Below, piece after piece: positions 6,197 to 45,185 of a stretch of 45,185 bases of DNA; the stretch's first letter is position 1; every line of letters starts with the position of its first letter. The position numbers and the translations under genes are program-made. The notes beneath the pieces are model-generated. The model was not told the origin of the DNA and ran no database searches. It saw only the letters and a list, made by a program, of their open reading frames with translations. Where the stretch lies: IMG/VR virus record IMGVR_UViG_3300027933_000001, positions 1-45,185 of that record; one strand, given 5' to 3'.

Positions 6197-7689
6197 AAAA
6201 TGAAAGGCAAACCTCGCCCCTTCTAGGGGCGGGGTAAAAAATTTTAAGCGAAACATCTATTTCTCTTTAAGATGTCCTCCTCTGGTCAACTCTCAAGATA
6301 TGAGGAGCGGGAGCCGATTTCTCCCGCAATACCAGAGGAAGGCGTCTACGAAGTCGAGTATAAGAATAAGAGGACAAATGTTGTTAGACTTCTCCCAAAC
6401 GGTTTTCAGGAAAGGAAGTTAAGGAAGTTTGCAGACACGTCTGCCAGGTTGTTCAACGAGGTCAACTACGAGAGAAGACAGCAGTTCTTCCAACAACATC
6501 AAGTTGACTTCAAATCGACATGGGGCAAATACTACGAGAAGTACAAGGGTATACTAGGTGTTAATGCACAAGCAGTTCTTCAGAAGAACAACGAGGCATG
6601 GTCGTCATTCTTTTCACTCCTCAATCTGAAGAAAAAAGGAAAATTGCCACCGCATATGAACCACGTTTCACCACCTCGTTATTGGAAGAAGGAGAAGAAG
6701 AGGAAGTTACTCCTAGTTATCAGACAAGATAGATATGTTGTAGATGAGAAGAACCACAAGCTCATCCTCAAGGACTTCAACCTCGAAATAGAATTTGTTG
6801 GTGGGTTGAGGTGGTATGGCAAACAAGGTAGGTTGGAGATATATTATGACGACGTTGAGAACGCGTGGTACGCTTCAATACCAGTTGAAGTAGGCGTAGA
6901 AGAAACAAAGACTGGAAAGAAGAGTAAGTACATTGTGAGAGGAGAGAGAAAGTCAATCCAGGTTGAAGCCCCGAAGGGAAACAAGGTCGCATCCATCGAC
7001 TTGGGCATAAACATCCTAGCAAGCGTTGTAGTGGACGACGGTACTTGGTTACTCTATAAAGGTGTTAGAGCTAAGGAAGACTACTTCTATCTTCAAAAGA
7101 AGATAGCCGAGGTTCAGTCTCTCGCAGACAAGGCAAGAAATCTAGGAGAGTATGAAGCTCAGGAAGAACTAAACAGAGAGAAGAGGAGACTCTTTAAGAA
7201 ACTAACCAAGCGTCTACTTCACCTGTACAGAACCTTGGCATCTCATATGGTTAAAACACTTCACGATCAAGGAGTTTCGACCATTTATCTAGGCTACCCC
7301 TTCAATATCGCACAGGACAGGGGAAATAAATTCACCGTGAATTTGTGGTCTTACCATAAGTTGATGAACGCCATTAAGTTGAAGGCTCAAGAATACGGTA
7401 TGAAAGTGTACGAAGTTGTTGAGTACAACACATCAAAGTACTGTGCATACCATAACGTTGAAGTCAGTAGGAGACCGAGAGGAGTAGTCACTTGTCCTTT
7501 AGGGCACAAACTCCATTCAGATCTTAACGGTGCATTGAATATCTTGAAGAAAGCTGTTGGCATCACAATTTCAACAGTGAAGAAACCGTTATCTTTCCTA
7601 GTACTTCATAACGGAGTAGCACCCGTAAAGGGGTGTAACACCTAAGACCTCGGTGAACCCTCGTCCTTCCAGGGCGGGGAGGAGGTCAG
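6197..7689 (+). mobile_element. IS200/IS605-family solo-tnpB element (IS1341-like organisation)
   Basis: Left hairpin CTCGCCCCTTCTAGGGGCGGGG after TGAC; right hairpin GAACCCTCGTCCTTCCAGGGCGGGGAGGAGGTCAG; no tnpA. Confidence 0.88.
6272..7645 (+). CDS. tnpB: TnpB endonuclease
   Basis: SIDLG, VVEYNTSKYC, CAYH..CPLGH, HSDLNGALNI motifs. Confidence 0.92.
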   Translation: MSSSGQLSRYEEREPISPAIPEEGVYEVEYKNKRTNVVRLLPNGFQERKLRKFADTSARLFNEVNYERRQQFFQQHQVDFKSTWGKYYEKYKGILGVNAQAVLQKNNEAWSSFFSLLNLKKKGKLPPHMNHVSPPRYWKKEKKRKLLLVIRQDRYVVDEKNHKLILKDFNLEIEFVGGLRWYGKQGRLEIYYDDVENAWYASIPVEVGVEETKTGKKSKYIVRGERKSIQVEAPKGNKVASIDLGINILASVVVDDGTWLLYKGVRAKEDYFYLQKKIAEVQSLADKARNLGEYEAQEELNREKRRLFKKLTKRLLHLYRTLASHMVKTLHDQGVSTIYLGYPFNIAQDRGNKFTVNLWSYHKLMNAIKLKAQEYGMKVYEVVEYNTSKYCAYHNVEVSRRPRGVVTCPLGHKLHSDLNGALNILKKAVGITISTVKKPLSFLVLHNGVAPVKGCNT

Positions 7690-11643: not shown

Positions 11644-11925
11644 TTGCTATATATATTTATTCTGATGTGTGCAATCAAACATATGAAAATCGGTAGATAT
11701 AAGGTAGAGTGCGACGATGAGTTCTGTTACATTACCAATCCAGACGGGAAAGTAACTACAATAGACAAGGACAATTTTAGCACATTCGCTAAAAACTTAG
11801 CAAGAACTATAGCATTAGAAAAAATACCAGTGAACGAAATAGAGAATTATGATAAGAGAAAATTAGATGAAATGACTAACCGCATCTATTCCCAAATGAT
11901 GAGATCAGTAATGTATAACACCTGA
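11644..11925 (+). CDS. Hypothetical protein (start probably at MKIGRY)
   Basis: ORF track. Confidence 0.65.
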   Translation: MLYIFILMCAIKHMKIGRYKVECDDEFCYITNPDGKVTTIDKDNFSTFAKNLARTIALEKIPVNEIENYDKRKLDEMTNRIYSQMMRSVMYNT

Positions 11926-11988
11926 AAACACAGATGTGTTTTCAAAAGTTTTTTCTCTACTTTTAATATCGTTCTTAACAATACACAT

Positions 11989-12807
11989 ATGCCACAACCA
12001 CCTCCTAACTCTACACCACCTCATGTTTCTACTGCACCACCCCCAACAATACACGTAAGCCCTACATCTGCGGTAACTAGCCTTTTTTCTTTCAATTTTT
12101 TGTCAATTATACTTATTGCAGTAGTAGTAGGATTCGCAATGATGTTACTGATTATTAAGCTGAAGTCTCGCCGTAATGTCCAGTTGTTTGATGTTAATGC
12201 AAGGAACGCCGACGCTATATTTCTAGTAGTTCAGAAAAAAACCAAAAAGGTAATTCTTGTACCCGCAAGGTATATAGCGACAGGTCTCTTCATAGGTAAC
12301 ACGAGTGATAATGACATTTATATTATAGCAGTAAAGCCTGACATAACTCCATTTTACATTCATGGTATAAACAAACCATTCTATTTTGCTGTTGGCGAGA
12401 CCACAGTATTCCTGACGATGAATTTGTATACATTGTCAGACCTAGCTACTGCTAGGATTTTCAGTGACAAAAGCTTCTCTGAGTTGGTAGCAGATATCCT
12501 TTCAGGGTCTACTCAGTATACTTCAAACTTTGTCGTAGGTCAATACAAGCTTGCTATAACTACAGACCTATCTAGCGTACTAGATGACTACCTCATATCA
12601 CTACAAACCAGCAGTGCAGAGAATATAATCCACTTACTTACAAGTGCTGGTAACGAAATAACTAATCTGCAGAAGATATCATTAGCAAAGCAGAAGTTAC
12701 AAACAGTATTAGCAACAAATAGGACTAAGTTAATTCTTGCACTAGCGTTAACTATCCCGATAATCCTAGCATTCGTATACATATTACTACACATAGTAGG
12801 GAAGTAA
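11989..12807 (+). CDS. Membrane protein with Pro-rich N-terminus
   Basis: N- and C-terminal TM helices. Confidence 0.8.
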   Translation: MPQPPPNSTPPHVSTAPPPTIHVSPTSAVTSLFSFNFLSIILIAVVVGFAMMLLIIKLKSRRNVQLFDVNARNADAIFLVVQKKTKKVILVPARYIATGLFIGNTSDNDIYIIAVKPDITPFYIHGINKPFYFAVGETTVFLTMNLYTLSDLATARIFSDKSFSELVADILSGSTQYTSNFVVGQYKLAITTDLSSVLDDYLISLQTSSAENIIHLLTSAGNEITNLQKISLAKQKLQTVLATNRTKLILALALTIPIILAFVYILLHIVGK

Positions 12808-14389: not shown

Positions 14390-15457
14390 ATGTATAATGT
14401 TCTTCTTAAAGTTTCATTACTAAACGATTTAAAAATATACGACCCTATCTTCAATTTATTTCCAAGAGATCAGCGTATAATGGAAGAACTAAAGGTAAGC
14501 ATAAAAAAAGATGGGTTAAGGGAACCTATAGTTGTAGACGCAGACAATTATATAATAGACGGAATGACGAGATACCTCGTACTAAAAGAGTTAGCTAAGG
14601 AGAGCGATGAATATTCTAAAGTCCTCACGCTTCAATATAGAGACTTAAAAATAACCAAGGATCCGCAAACTGCAAAGTTGTTAGCACTTGTTCTAAATGT
14701 AATAAGAAGACCGATGAAACTCGAGGAGCTCGTTAATTATATTGAGGAGATATATAAGATCAGAGAATCAACTAATCAAACAGCGAGGATAGATAATGAT
14801 ATAGATAAGAAGATAGAGGAAACACTTCAAAACATTACAAAAAAGAAGATACCTATCGATGACGTTAAATATATGGTGTTATGGGTAAAATCACATTACC
14901 CGCATATTTATAATTATACAAAAAAGAAAGGAATAGTATTTAATAAGAAGGAAATAGAGAAATTATTGAGTTTAACTAAGAATTTTGCTAATGATTTCAC
15001 TGATGAAGATTTAGATTTAATTTTCTCAAATATCCGCAAGGTTATTACAGATTATTATGCTGAACTTAAAGATGCTAAGGATGCTAGGGAATTTATGTCA
15101 AAACTTAGCGAATTATTAGAAAGAGAAAAAGCTAGAAAAACGGAGAAATTGAGTGCGAAGATAGAAAAGAAAAGGAGTGATTACCGTAGGGACGACCATA
15201 AGGAAAACGATAATAAGAAAGAAGAAATTAGGATAGAGAAAAATAGTAAAGCAGACCAACAGCAACATATTAGCAAGGAAGAACTTTGTAAATATATTGA
15301 CTTAGCATCTTTTAGAAAATTTATAGATAAAATTGAGGAGAAAGTTAAGAAGAATGAGGAAGTTGAGATAGATAGGGATCTTTTCTATTCTATCAAAACG
15401 ATACTTGAAAATGAGTTATCTGACGGAACCGCCTTTAAATACTTCAAGGTGGTTTGA
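14390..15457 (+). CDS. ParB/Srx N-terminal domain protein
   Basis: LKVSIKKDGLREPIVV..IIDGMTRY..NVIRR. Confidence 0.85.
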   Translation: MYNVLLKVSLLNDLKIYDPIFNLFPRDQRIMEELKVSIKKDGLREPIVVDADNYIIDGMTRYLVLKELAKESDEYSKVLTLQYRDLKITKDPQTAKLLALVLNVIRRPMKLEELVNYIEEIYKIRESTNQTARIDNDIDKKIEETLQNITKKKIPIDDVKYMVLWVKSHYPHIYNYTKKKGIVFNKKEIEKLLSLTKNFANDFTDEDLDLIFSNIRKVITDYYAELKDAKDAREFMSKLSELLEREKARKTEKLSAKIEKKRSDYRRDDHKENDNKKEEIRIEKNSKADQQQHISKEELCKYIDLASFRKFIDKIEEKVKKNEEVEIDRDLFYSIKTILENELSDGTAFKYFKVV

Positions 15458-41958: not shown

Positions 41959-42783
41959 CTACTCTTCTTGTTGTTGAATATTCTCTTCAACGAGAACCAA
42001 TGGAATTTTATCTAAACCTAGGAGACGGCATAGGTAATTGTCACACTCCTTGTAACCTACAATTTTGTATTTTTCTGGGTTGTTATTTGCTAAATTAAGA
42101 ATTTCGTCATAAATACTCTTTGCAATTTCTCTAAGACGATCTTCTACCCTTTCACGAATTGCGTCTACAACTTCATATATTTTATCAGCTATATCGTCTG
42201 GTACATCGCCAAACACCTTCTCATAAGCACGTTGAAAAGCACTTGCCATGTCCTGAAAATACCAACATAAAGTGCATGGAAGAGTATCAACGATCATCGC
42301 CACAAAAGCACCGATTTCTGGTCTATTACTAAAATCCTCAATATATATGATATCAGGCAATTCGACTACATGACCTTCTAAACCTTCTGGATCCAAGCTA
42401 TATGAATCGAAACAGTCCTCTAACGCATCGATTATGTGCTTAACTATGGGTTCAACATCATAATTCTTTTTCAAGTAATCAAACAGGTAATCTAGCATAT
42501 CTTCTTGCATATGATAGTCTTTCAGTGTTTCTAACATACATTTAAAATCATAATCGCACGTAGTAGCTATTAATTGTGCTACTTCGTCTTTCGGGAATTT
42601 TTTATAGTTTTTGAAAACATAATCAGAGAAATTAACGCTTATATCATACAATACGTTATCCAGCTCTTTCCTATTTTCTATGCCTAAAATTTTCCTTAGT
42701 TTCTTCCTATTATTCAGCACTTCAGTAACACAATTCAAATTGCAATACTCACTTATTTTTAGAAAATATTCGTTTGTATTCAT
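41959..42783 (-). CDS. Acidic helical hypothetical protein
   Basis: 274-aa ORF with RBS and TATA-like TTTAAATA. Confidence 0.8.
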   Translation of the reverse strand: MNTNEYFLKISEYCNLNCVTEVLNNRKKLRKILGIENRKELDNVLYDISVNFSDYVFKNYKKFPKDEVAQLIATTCDYDFKCMLETLKDYHMQEDMLDYLFDYLKKNYDVEPIVKHIIDALEDCFDSYSLDPEGLEGHVVELPDIIYIEDFSNRPEIGAFVAMIVDTLPCTLCWYFQDMASAFQRAYEKVFGDVPDDIADKIYEVVDAIRERVEDRLREIAKSIYDEILNLANNNPEKYKIVGYKECDNYLCRLLGLDKIPLVLVEENIQQQEE

Positions 42784-42884
42784 AATTTATCCCCTCTCGT
42801 CGAAATGAAATTTTGATAAAAAAGTATTTAAATACATGGGGCTATCCATCCCCGCTGGCGTGGCTTTCCGCCCTGGAAGAGCGA

Positions 42885-43951
42885 GTGTGCAATAGGATTC
42901 TTATTGAAAACCAGCCCTTGCTCATGTGCAATATCATTCTTATTGACTCTTTCTTTTGCTTGTGTGCAGAGCTATTATTAATTGAGGTATATATTTGCTT
43001 ATGTGCAATAGTGGTATTATTGAGCAACTTAATTGCTTATGTGCAATACAAATATTATTGAATTCTACTATTGCTTATGTGCAAAACGTGTATTATTGAA
43101 TGCATTCTTTGCTTATGTGCAGGTAGATTGTTATTGACTTACCTCATTGCTTGTGTGCAGTCAACTGATTATTGAAACGATTTCCTGCTAATGTGCAGGT
43201 TATTTGTTATTGAACTTTGCTCTTGTTTATCTGCAACGACCACGTTATTAAGCCTTTTGCTTGCTTGTGTGCATTGCTTATCTTATTGAAAGGTATTATT
43301 GCTTGTGTGCAGTACATTAATTATTGAAATAGCTGATTGCTTGTGTGCAGTTGCATCGATATTGAGGAGTAGTATTGCTTATGTGCAGGTAAGGGATTAT
43401 TGAGCTATATGTTTGCTCATGTGCAGTTGATCCTTTATTGAGTGTTTCTCTTGCTAATGTGCGGTCATGAGTTTATTGAATAATGTTATTGCTTGTGTGC
43501 AGTTAGATTGTTGTTGAATATGTTTCTTGCTTGTGTGCAATACGCCTCTTACTGAATTCCTGAATTGCTCGTGTGCAATAGGGTTCTTGTTGAAAACCAA
43601 CCCTTGCTCATGTGCAGTTTTACATTTATTAACGATACCTTTTGCTCATGTGCAAGACGGCGTTTATTGACGTTATCTTTTGCTTATGTGTAAGTTTGCC
43701 GTTATTGATCTTTATTTTTGCTTATGTGTATATGACCTCTTATTAATTTTTTCGCTTGCTTATGTGCAGTTTGTATTTTATCAACAATCAGGATTGCTTA
43801 TGTGCAGTAGGGTGTTTATCGACTATACTTATTGCTTGTGTGCAGTCCAACCGTTATTGAGGTATATATTTGCTTATGTGCAAGAATGGCTTTATTGAGC
43901 GTACTTCTTGCTTATGTGCAATATCGTTCTTATTGATTTTTTCCTTATGTA
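42885..43951 (-). ncRNA. TIGR-type tandem interspaced guide array (28 units, 38-bp period)
   Basis: Plus-strand unit TTGCTT(A/G)TGTGCA-N9-TTATTGA-N9 with almost all spacers unique; begins directly after the stop codon of the Nop/IS110-like gene. Confidence 0.88.
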
Positions 43952-44983
43952 TTATTTAATAATCTTTTTCTTCTTAAGCCACGTTGTAACCTCCTCTCTG
44001 TTTATACCTAGTTCTTCTATTATCTTTTCAAATTTAGCTTTATATTTTGCAGTCTTCGTGTCAACGTAATAGTCTGTAATTGGCGATTCAATGAAATCTT
44101 CGTGCTTCTTGAGGACTTCGTATTCTTTCCCCAACACTACCTTGTAAGCCTCATGTAATGGCACACCTTGCCTATAGTGTAAAGAGATTGCGAAATACTG
44201 TGATAATAGTAAGGATATTGCTTTCCTGATAGCAGTCCTCTGTACTCTTAGCTTATTCCAGTCTGGATGCTTAGTTGCGATTTCTTCTTTAAATGATTTT
44301 ATTATCTTTGCGTAAACACCGCCAGCTAATATGAGGTTGTTAGCTAAAATTCCTAGCAGAAATGTTTTTACTGTTCTGTTATACTTAACGTTTTTCGCTG
44401 ACGTGCCAATAAGTTTCGTCCCATCGTTAGGGCATAACCACCCTTCCTTCGAGGGAATTGCTGGTTTCCCATTCGAGGACTCACCAGCGTAATAGTAATA
44501 TCCGCATTTAGAACATGTAAACATTACGGCTAAACCAGCGTACTTCCTGAACTTATTAATGTTATACTGAAACTTTGGTGGATATGCATAAACGATAAGT
44601 CTAGCACCGTTAACAGCTCCTATCCCCCTAATAAACACCAGGAAGTTAGTAAATTCAGGGAACTTAGTTACCACCTTGCCTATAAGTCCCTTGGCTATCT
44701 CCTCTTGTCTGAGTAGTTCCATGAACCTCTCTATGAGGTCATTAGACGGCGTTTCTTCAACAATTCTCACAGGCTCACCGCATACTGGACATTTATCGCG
44801 TTTTTCGTCTTCCTTAAGTAATATCATATGACCGTTCTTGCACGCTGTATATCTCCTTAGGAAGACCCACTTATTGTTCTCTTTTTTTGCCCCTATCCTG
44901 TTCCCAAATGCTACTCTAAGTTTTATTATATCATCTCTGAATGCTACCAAATCTCTTAAAGGAACTAAATCTGCCTCGCTCAT
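43952..44983 (-). CDS. Tas-like (TasA-type, nuclease-less) Nop/IS110-related RNA-binding protein with two Zn-ribbon insertions
   Basis: LRDLVAFRDDIIKLRVAFGNRI coiled coil; FLVFIRGIGAVNGARLI, FRKYAGL, YNRTVKTFL, RTAIRKAISLL; no DEDD/RuvC or HNH seen; adjacent dual-spacer array. Confidence 0.82.
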   Translation of the reverse strand: MSEADLVPLRDLVAFRDDIIKLRVAFGNRIGAKKENNKWVFLRRYTACKNGHMILLKEDEKRDKCPVCGEPVRIVEETPSNDLIERFMELLRQEEIAKGLIGKVVTKFPEFTNFLVFIRGIGAVNGARLIVYAYPPKFQYNINKFRKYAGLAVMFTCSKCGYYYYAGESSNGKPAIPSKEGWLCPNDGTKLIGTSAKNVKYNRTVKTFLLGILANNLILAGGVYAKIIKSFKEEIATKHPDWNKLRVQRTAIRKAISLLLSQYFAISLHYRQGVPLHEAYKVVLGKEYEVLKKHEDFIESPITDYYVDTKTAKYKAKFEKIIEELGINREEVTTWLKKKKIIK

Positions 44984-44989
44984 GCCTCA

Positions 44990-45127
44990 TCACTTCGCAG
45001 AAACATATATATTGTATAGCTCTGCATATATTACTTGGACTAGAAATAATGCATCTTTGATATTTCCTGACTTAATCAAGTTATCTAATTCTTTTATGTA
45101 TTCATTTATCTCATTTATTTTTTCCAT
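44990..45127 (-). CDS. Small protein directly upstream of the tas-like gene (start MEKINE)
   Basis: 45-aa ORF ending 6 bp before the tas ATG. Confidence 0.55.
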   Translation of the reverse strand: MEKINEINEYIKELDNLIKSGNIKDALFLVQVIYAELYNIYVSAK

Positions 45128-45158
45128 TCTAAAACGCCCCCGAAAACACAGGTGTGAT

Positions 45159-45185
45159 AAAATAAACGGCAACCCTCGCCCTTTA
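45159..45185 (+). mobile_element. Start of another IS605-type left end (truncated by window)
   Basis: AAAATAAACGGCAACCCTCGCCCTTTA resembles 6197 and 20014 ends. Confidence 0.6.

Follow-up and report, generated by a model that had tools for sequence, protein, structure and literature searches.

A nuclease-free TIGR-TasA system with zinc-ribbon insertions in an ATSV-like virus of Sulfolobales

The window analysed here is a stretch of 45,185 nt, positions 1 to 45,185 of IMG/VR virus record IMGVR_UViG_3300027933_000001. Near its end it carries a gene for a 343-aa protein, here named tasA, and an array of short repeats that adjoins the gene. The locus is a TIGR-TasA system of a virus of Sulfolobales that resembles Acidianus tailed spindle virus (ATSV, KU645528). 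Its most likely role is RNA-guided binding or silencing of genes of the host or of elements integrated in it, and we regard this reading as probable. A first-pass annotation of the same DNA had proposed a programmable DNA binder, neither a cutter nor a recombinase. The Tas/Nop fold predicted for the protein, the lack of a nuclease domain, the array and the two-strand geometry of the guide matches argue for that proposal. TIGR-Tas systems were described in 2025, and TIGR-TasA as a kind of system is already known. The discovery paper reported that genuine targets are hard to identify and called the role of nuclease-free TasA 'less apparent' (PMC12045711).

The tasA locus and its relatives

The tasA candidate is a single ORF (open reading frame), which cannot be longer because of an upstream stop codon (Table 1). 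An identical copy is present on a 64-kb sibling contig of IMG/VR UViG_3300027933_000001. The protein is 88.7% identical to ATSV B343, which has the same length, and 77.8% identical to a protein of Sulfolobales virus YNP1. The window and the ATSV genome have about 79% DNA identity in the parts that can be aligned. ATSV is a large tailed spindle virus of Sulfolobales. Its gene has the same context as tasA in the window, with a 45-aa ORF upstream and an annotated 915-bp repeat_region directly downstream. The ATSV record labels B343 and the array merely 'hypothetical protein' and 'repeat_region', and the array has previously been cited as a TIGR-like array (PMC12045711).

A HMMER scan of 1.84 billion representative proteins identified 302 relatives of TasA. 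The gene is under purifying selection, with dN/dS values of 0.06-0.12 against relatives, and it is kept across 12 loci. On these grounds a decayed IS110 remnant was rejected.

Fold of TasA and absence of a DNA nuclease

An AlphaFold2 model was built on an alignment of the window TasA and its relatives, and has a mean pLDDT of 89.7, a pTM of 0.83 and no segment below 50. It runs from a helix (residues 3-30) through a five-stranded beta module (32-77) and a second helix (81-105) into a helical region with a helix-hairpin-helix (HhH), which extends to Y148-A-G-L. A second beta module (154-194), four long helices reaching residue 291 and two short C-terminal helices follow. The protein had been described as starting directly at the coiled coil, with no N-terminal RuvC or HNH domain, and this description holds, since the ORF cannot extend and the model opens with helix 3-30.

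The nearest solved structures are Tas proteins. Foldseek against the PDB places TasR 9MTY first (E=1.2e-4), followed by seven TasH chains and then by the IS621 and ISCro4 recombinases; the matches beyond these have E values of at least 0.7 and are unrelated. The family profile likewise finds 9MTY as the sole significant solved relative (E=8.6e-5), with residues 84-156 aligned to TaTasR 140-213 through the G-I-G and YAG motifs. Alignment by hhalign to SpTasH, from the Salicola phage CGphi29 genome, gives a probability of 99% (E=2.3e-18). Residues G120, G122 and Y148 are invariant even in distant relatives.

Family models point in the same direction. The NCBIfam model NF052498 (TIGR_Tas_endo, TIGR-Tas RNA-guided endonuclease) matches residues 10-265 (E=7.6e-13, 48.9 bits), and by this comparison the window TasA is related to these endonucleases and is not their equivalog. 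There is a weak NCBIfam IS110 match to the window protein, and 11 of 19 more distant relatives match Pfam Transposase_20, the C-terminal domain of IS110. The Pfam scan of TasA found no nuclease family and only sub-threshold zinc-ribbon or rubredoxin-like matches to its two inserts, and the PHROGs scan returned only an unnamed phrog. TasA is defined as a TIGR-associated Nop-domain protein without a nuclease domain (PMC12045711). Because of its Tas/Nop fold matches and the absence of a nuclease domain, the window protein is classed as TasA.

The guide array

The array was found downstream of tasA in 12 of 12 related IMG/VR loci, where its size ranges from 8 units to over 38. In 11 of these loci the distance from the tasA stop codon to the array is 4-58 nt, and in the other one (L010) it is 333 nt. 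On the plus strand each unit consists of the edge repeat TTGCTYRTGTGCA (13 nt), 9 variable nt, the loop repeat TTATTGA (7 nt) and a further 9-10 variable nt. Read on the minus strand, this becomes the edge UGCACAYRAGCAA, spacer A of 9-10 nt, the loop UCAAUAA and spacer B of 9 nt. The edge motif is confined to the array, with 24 occurrences against 0.15 expected. Judged from its repeats, the array is of the dual-repeat TIGR architecture, with a 38-nt in place of a 36-nt unit; a unit of this length, with an edge of 13 nt and a loop of 7 nt, appears to be undescribed in the available papers.

The edge repeat on the minus strand has UG, an inner C...G pair and then C-A-A, which fits the layout of box D (UG) and box C (C-N-A). 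The same layout is found in the SpTasH edge, AAGCGAGCCA, and in the edge UUGCGAGCCR of a 29%-identical relative. A CRISPR array was also considered and rejected on account of the two distinct short repeats (13 and 7 nt) and the 9-nt spacers. The Rfam scan of 42600-45185 found nothing, including no CRISPR direct repeat.

Runs of at least five T terminate transcription in archaea. Across the 12 arrays there are two such runs on the minus-strand reading, the sense of tasA, and 41 on the opposite reading. The box motifs and the truncated terminal repeats are symmetric on both strands and give no signal of orientation. The oligo-T asymmetry and the geometry of the targets (see below) agree that the array is read on the minus strand, the same as tasA.

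Comparison of the arrays of the window, L001 and L008-L017 identified 26 guide families common to two or more diverged viruses (with at most 3 differences in 18 nt), and most guides are unique. This suggests that the array evolves by slow divergence and turnover.

It is also conceivable that the array is a DNA element, such as a set of iterons, a centromere or an origin, which the zinc-ribbon protein binds directly. The array does consist of short conserved motifs at regular spacing, zinc ribbons can bind DNA, and the ATSV annotators left an unexplained repeat_region. Such an element is very improbable, however, as the motifs are constant from virus to virus but the variable segments are replaced, and these segments match external genes in a defined two-strand geometry. 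The strand-asymmetric avoidance of oligo-T and the conservation of an RNA-processing dyad in TasA also speak against it.

Several further observations were made around the arrays. A perfect, TATA-box-like palindrome, TATTTAAATA, and a GC-rich stretch lie just past the distal end of the array, at window 42826-42878; folding of the GC-rich stretch is no better than that of shuffles (z = -0.2). Almost the same element is found past the end of a truncated array in a relative of 36% identity (L003:270-320), and it is absent from this position in other lineages. In a distant relative of the zinc-ribbon clade the array is upstream of tasA (L003:1-240) and has two 11-nt repeats, TGTAATACACA and TGTAYAACAGA. 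In another distant relative it begins inside the 3' end of tasA (L005:1980-2293), with the canonical UUGCGAGCCR edge and variable loops. ATSV has a second repeat region of 290 bp (L001 5113-5402, record 11703-11992), which is annotated as 'possible viral CRISPR locus' and lies about 1.5 kb from the TIGR array.

Guide targets in Sulfolobales chromosomes

At least some of the guides appear, from their sequence matches, to be aimed at Sulfolobales chromosomal genes for small proteins and not at the virus itself. The searches used 183 distinct family guides, each taken as an 18-nt tandem site composed of spacer A and spacer B, and two arrangements of the spacers were compared. The scans of IMG/VR and other collections covered exact patterns only, up to a cap. 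A search with the 183 guides of the window, of 127 kb of related loci and of the complete ATSV genome, taken in pieces, gave no self-targets beyond chance, and self-regulation is therefore unlikely.

The most conserved guide (A = GG[C/T/G]UGGUUU, B = GAA[U/C]CCUAU) is shared by ATSV, two further loci and the window, which has two copies of it. Its candidate target duplex carries GGYTGGTTTATAGGRTTC. A metagenome scan for spacer A followed by the reverse complement of spacer B, A+rc(B), gave 82 matches, two of which are mutually homologous low-GC contigs. The site lies in a gene for a protein of about 140 aa with four predicted membrane helices, and homologues of this gene are found in hot-spring metagenomes and on the Saccharolobus islandicus chromosome CP001731.1. 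The ATSV guide has an 18/18 match to this chromosome (L143:8205) and to metagenome contig L070, and both window copies match the membrane-protein gene at 17 of 18 positions. The guide variants differ where each of the two Gly codons of G-W-F-I-G-F has its third base.

All family guides were then searched against 28.8 kb of contigs fetched for the membrane-protein gene. A second guide family has an exact match in a gene for a 122-aa membrane protein (L144:6773), for which the chance expectation is estimated at about 1.5e-4, and its variant differs at the third position of an Ile codon. Two variant guides match with 2 mismatches in a 138-aa gene (L143:9433), 1.2 kb from the first target, and a further guide matches with 2 mismatches at the end of the same gene (L143:9149).

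The geometry of the matches is uniform. Of the 20 matches with 2 mismatches or fewer, all are in the A+rc(B) arrangement (20/20) and 0 in the alternative one. The shuffled-guide control gave 0.8 matches per arrangement at 2 mismatches and about 0 at one or fewer. It can be derived that A+rc(B) is the sole arrangement that yields the 3' overhangs reported for TasR. Since the two spacers match opposite strands in adjacent blocks, the substrate is likely to be double-stranded DNA and not RNA.

This geometry also bears on a possible RNA-directed complex resembling a snoRNP, in which the guides would send TasA to host or viral transcripts for blocking or modification in the manner of box C/D. The Nop-domain fold is common to Nop5 (PMC12045711), and the archaeal host has a box C/D system. 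In the natural matches, however, one of two adjacent blocks has a spacer with the coding-strand sequence and the other a spacer complementary to that strand, so that a single RNA could not pair with both. TasA also has no N-terminal fibrillarin-binding domain of the Nop5 type, the minus-strand repeats have no GA dinucleotide for a k-turn, and TasR was inactive on RNA. We consider an RNA-directed role highly unlikely.

The targeted genes lie in a variable region with remnants of integrated plasmids. In S. islandicus this region contains fragments of SSV-type integrase genes as well as stretches in common with conjugative plasmids of the pSOG, pAH1 and pKEF9 type. A guide of YNP1 (CCCAGCAGG / AATTAATAT) has a one-mismatch match to a small ORF of pSOG2 (L146, NC_010598) at 15147-15164. 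The site is 150 bp from a homologue of a 118-aa gene, which in S. islandicus borders the chromosomal targets. Guide matches are not enriched overall in the conjugative plasmids pAH1, pSOG2 and pYN01.

For the conserved guide, in both geometries, IMG/VR gave unrelated phage contigs only, one of which had only TnpB-like genes in common with the window. The scan of species-representative genomes gave chance bacterial matches only; the representatives evidently do not include the S. islandicus strain that has the exact site. No homologues of the target proteins were found in the virus. Identifiable natural targets in Sulfolobales chromosomes appear to be undescribed in the available papers.

The 118-aa gene beside the targets (L143, CP001731.1, 9719-10075) encodes a protein 87% identical to a pSOG2 protein and has no family match. 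By eye, a D...E-V-K motif suggests a PD-(D/E)xK nuclease fold.

Zinc-ribbon inserts

The two beta modules of TasA carry predicted zinc ribbons. The first-pass annotation had located ribbon 1 inside the coiled coil. Its motif C48-K-N-G-H52...C65-P-V-C68 is indeed present, and its location is more exactly the hairpin tip of the coiled coil, where a beta-rich insert (residues 31-80) separates helices 3-30 and 81-105. The second motif, C157-S-K-C160...C184-P-N-D187, follows Y148-A-G-L151, as had been noted. C48, H52, C65 and C68, as well as all four ligands of ribbon 2, are invariant in the close-family alignment of 21 relatives (63-94% identical). The dN/dS values against relatives are 0.06-0.17 for ribbon 1 and 0.02-0.11 for ribbon 2, compared to 0.06-0.13 for the core.

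The C-x3-H...CPxCG motif of ribbon 1 is retained in relatives down to 23-36% identity. Ribbon 2 has a Cys at the D187 position in distant relatives, or an Asp in the first knuckle instead. Because about 20 of the best 149 clusters (of the 302 relatives) have the tip motif, and a subset of these also has the wedge ribbon, usually with four Cys or with an Asp in the first knuckle, the two ribbons, on sequence grounds, mark a clade and not a single virus.

The positions of the inserts can be compared with solved Tas proteins. TaTasR has coiled-coil helices K109-D138 and A142-H168, a tip of R139-D141 and a wedge of G210-K230 (Xu et al., 10.64898/2026.09.09.750476). By the anchors of the profile alignment, ribbon 1 (31-80) stands in place of the 3-residue tip and ribbon 2 (150-202) in place of the 21-residue wedge, and YAG and W/Y-x-N-K anchors flank the wedge in both proteins. 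In the hhalign alignment SpTasH has no insert at the position of ribbon 2. The TaTasR wedge parts the displaced DNA strand from the RNA-DNA duplex, and the wedge of PateTasR touches box C of the tigRNA (10.64898/2026.09.09.750476). Dual-repeat Tas proteins have been described as having a compact core with minimal variation (10.64898/2026.09.09.750476), and zinc is not mentioned in the three published TIGR-Tas accounts consulted for comparison (including PMC12045711 and 10.64898/2026.09.09.750476), nor is cysteine in one of them. A zinc-ribbon tip and wedge in a dual-repeat TasA thus appear to be undescribed in the available papers.

The ribbons seem to be rigid, lineage-specific elaborations of the coiled-coil tip and the wedge, which probably add nucleic-acid contacts or stability at places occupied in TasR and TasH by a nuclease domain and a simple loop. 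A more speculative idea is that they serve as rigid clamps or contacts that make up for the missing nuclease domain and are suited to 9+9-bp duplexes at about 80 degrees C.

The insert near YAGL could also be thought to conceal a catalytic site. IS110 enzymes have their catalytic Ser in a loop after the AGL motif, which matches the position of this insert, and S169, S170 and S178 are invariant in the close family. In such a case the S169-S170-N-G loop inside ribbon 2 would give DNA cleavage or recombination in the manner of the IS110 serine loop, or one of the inserts would act like a zinc-stabilised beta-beta-alpha nuclease. The insert, however, occupies the Tas wedge segment, and the serine-rich loop cannot be aligned to IS110 and is missing in relatives with a short ribbon 2. 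IS110 chemistry also requires a DEDD/RuvC domain, which TasA does not have. Ribbon 1 has three Cys, so that H52 is required as the fourth zinc ligand and no free catalytic His remains. A cryptic nuclease fold in the inserts, named at the outset as evidence that would overturn the DNA-binder proposal, was not found; their local fold matches are rubredoxin-like or zinc-ribbon proteins and never nucleases. Cryptic catalysis is therefore very improbable.

C-terminal region and guide processing

The C-terminal extension is shorter than the roughly 75 aa first estimated. The real extension is about 45 aa (299-343), and the preceding 25 or so residues form the conserved CTD5 loop, which aligns to SpTasH. 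The extension is common to the zinc-ribbon clade and is absent from phage TasA and from SpTasH.

By hhalign, residues 273-298 align with the C-terminal Tyr/His processing loop of SpTasH, with Y288 on SpTasH Y289 and H294 one column off H296; both are invariant in the 21 close relatives. In dual-repeat Tas proteins the Tyr/His dyad carries out metal-independent processing of pre-tigRNA (PMC13421893; 10.64898/2026.09.09.750476). A guide-processing dyad, Y288/H294, appears to be conserved in the window TasA. The earlier statement that the protein lacks a nuclease is accordingly right for DNA, as there is no nuclease domain, and needs correction for RNA, where the putative processing dyad is retained.

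Upstream ORF and possible partners

The 45-aa ORF ends 6 nt ahead of the tasA start codon, with a GAGG motif in between. It has weak similarity to SSV1 D-63 and phrog_7928 only. In other TasA lineages the upstream position is taken by an unrelated 107-aa ORF or by a 58-aa ORF starting with MELKLKW. The 45-aa protein had been suggested as a partner of TasA; since it is replaced in this way and is not conserved, it was rejected as a dedicated partner. From the gene neighbourhoods, the conserved module is tasA plus the array and not tasA plus a small protein.

TasA may still act as a recruiter or marker, with the TasA-tigRNA complex binding first and then bringing in another protein as the effector in trans, for example an integrase, a ParB-like protein or a nuclease of host or virus. 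The ribbons would then be docking surfaces, and the outcome would be cutting, recombination or segregation and not passive blocking. Zinc ribbons are common as protein-protein modules, and the tip insert appears to lie where the nuclease domain of the partner subunit would attach in the antiparallel TasR/TasH dimer. ATSV-like viruses encode an integrase. The discovery paper speculates that TasA aids integrases by DNA bending and also reports TasA-ParB operons (PMC12045711). There is, however, no conserved neighbour, as the upstream ORF varies by lineage and the window and ATSV have different genes downstream. A ParB-like gene is not adjacent, and other TasA proteins repress without partners. 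A recruiting role is thus unlikely, though less so than the alternatives considered above.

Proposed mechanism

In the favoured reading of RNA-guided silencing, a promoter upstream of the 45-aa ORF would drive one minus-strand transcript through tasA into the 28-unit array. TasA would dimerise via its coiled coil, by homology to other Tas proteins, and bind the edge and loop repeats. It probably cuts the precursor inside each edge repeat with Y288/H294, as its homologues do, to give 38-nt tigRNAs. The two 9-nt spacers of each tigRNA would pair with opposite strands of adjacent 9-bp blocks, the site being A followed by rc(B), and the complex, again by homology, would unwind and bend the 18-bp site. 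With no DNA nuclease, it would remain bound and block transcription or replication, as other TasA proteins have been shown to do. Nuclease-free TasA proteins bind DNA and repress transcription experimentally (10.64898/2026.09.09.750476).

Several observations weigh against this reading. A candidate target was found for only 2 of the 28 window guides, and three further window guides, in three exact IMG/VR scans, gave nothing, or unrelated phage contigs. The genomes matched are those of S. islandicus and metagenome contigs and not that of the virus's own host, and searches of Pfam, NCBIfam and PADLOC assigned the target proteins to no family. The loop repeat UCAAUAA is rich in A, as known loops are, yet shorter than these, and its first U and final AA are all that it has in common with the box layout. 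It cannot form the UG...C-N-A box pairing that is seen in the edge repeat, TaTasR and SpTasH. The aromatic/basic unwinding pair of SpTasH, W203/K211, aligns with G211/L219 here. Finally, the 48.9-bit score to the NCBIfam TIGR-Tas model is below its curated cut-off of 100 bits.

A fuller scenario is that the viral TasA silences genes of the host chromosome or of integrated rivals, that the guides track synonymous polymorphism in these genes, and that with the ribbons a guide of 9+9 bp can stay on DNA at about 80 degrees C. We give this combination an even chance. It can be speculated that the virus, by silencing the gene for the small membrane protein, gains an advantage over its host or over integrated rivals. 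If true, the scenario would for the first time give a TIGR-TasA system natural targets and a physiological role, in a lineage with genetically tractable relatives (S. islandicus). The candidate targets make the role of viral TIGR arrays approachable in Sulfolobus genetics through gene repression, infection and competition with integrated plasmids. The ribbon-built tip and wedge matter for understanding and engineering thermostable compact DNA binders.

Other features of the window

The features of the tasA locus are collected in Table 1. Elsewhere, the window has two TnpB/OrfB-like ORFs, at 1-~1100 (+) and ~6247-7640 (+), with a C-terminal CxxC...CxxC, which belong to the IS200/605-type family of RNA-guided nucleases. 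They surfaced through a match to the TnpB-like gene of an unrelated phage contig. Two 'transposase' genes are annotated in ATSV as well. A short tandem repeat of 21 nt, in about 3 copies, is found at 2898-2970.

Table 1. Features of the tasA locus (window coordinates)
Feature	Position	Strand	Evidence
Candidate promoter of the ORF45-tasA-array transcript, TATA-like TTTATTTTA	45158..45166	(-)	About 35 nt upstream of the 45-aa ORF; suggested by sequence
45-aa ORF (ATSV B45 homologue), first gene of putative operon	44990..45127	(-)	ORF; homologue in ATSV
tasA, nuclease-free TIGR-associated (Nop-domain) protein, 343 aa	43952..44983	(-)	ORF, identity to ATSV B343, AlphaFold2, Foldseek, profiles, dN/dS
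Coiled-coil helix 1, aa 3-30, protein start	44894..44977	(-)	DSSP on AlphaFold2 model
Zinc ribbon 1, aa 31-80 (C48, H52, C65, C68), coiled-coil tip insertion	44744..44893	(-)	Five beta strands in model, invariant ligands
Coiled-coil helix 2, aa 81-105	44669..44743	(-)	AlphaFold2 model; aligned to TaTasR from residue 140
CTD1: G-I-G helix-hairpin-helix and YAG motif, aa 106-149	44537..44668	(-)	Aligned to TaTasR 9MTY 140-213 and SpTasH
Zinc ribbon 2, aa 150-202 (C157, C160, C184, D187), wedge loop expansion	44378..44536	(-)	Invariant ligands, anchors
CTD5 loop with putative pre-tigRNA processing dyad, aa 273-298	44090..44167	(-)	SpTasH alignment, invariance
C-terminal extension, aa 299-343: two helices and basic KKKK tail	43955..44089	(-)	AlphaFold2 model
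TIGR array, 28 units of 38 nt (three of 39)	42879..43950	(-)	Adjoins tasA 3' end; repeat analysis
Second copy of conserved guide, other synonymous variant (A = GGGUUGGUUU, B = GAACCCUAU)	43565..43616	(-)	17/18 match
Last array guide (A = GGGCUGGUUU, B = GAAUCCUAU)	42879..42930	(-)	17/18 match to Sulfolobales membrane-protein gene

Comparison with known systems

ATSV B343 and its array are the nearest counterpart of the window system. Both have a 45-aa ORF upstream, a 38-nt dual-repeat array downstream and several identical or near-identical guides, and they differ in most guides, in the downstream gene and in the virus genome. The proteins FpTasA, MbTasA, PlTasA and BlTasA resemble the window TasA in having a solo Nop domain and coiled coil, no nuclease, and guide arrays adjoining the gene. 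RNA-guided DNA binding and repression have been shown for MbTasA, and structures of PlTasA have been solved (10.64898/2026.09.09.750476; 10.64898/2026.08.11.744272). PlTasA has accessory beta-hairpins instead of zinc ribbons. Published dual-repeat Tas proteins have a compact core and a 36-nt unit, in contrast to the 50-aa tip, 53-aa wedge and 38-nt unit of the window system.

TaTasR (9MTY) and SpTasH (9W04 and others) are built like the window TasA, with coiled coil, HhH, wedge and C-terminal helices in the same order, and also have the Tyr/His loop. Unlike it, they are DNA-cutting enzymes with an N-terminal RuvC or HNH nuclease. They have a 3-aa tip, a wedge of about 21 aa and no metal-binding inserts. 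Their loop repeats are longer and are closed by a G-C pair, unlike the loop in the window.

The IS110/IS621 bridge-RNA recombinases have a C-terminal RNA-binding domain of the same fold (Foldseek 8WT6, 9T56). The window TasA differs from them in lacking a DEDD RuvC and a demonstrable catalytic serine; bridge RNA and element ends are also missing, and it has a guide array instead. The archaeal box C/D sRNP (Nop5) also resembles the window system, with a coiled-coil dimer, a Nop domain and a guide RNA with two short guide segments. The window system differs in having neither a fibrillarin-binding N-terminal domain nor the k-turn boxes (RUGAUGA / CUGA), and the targets matched by its guides are double-stranded DNA sites.

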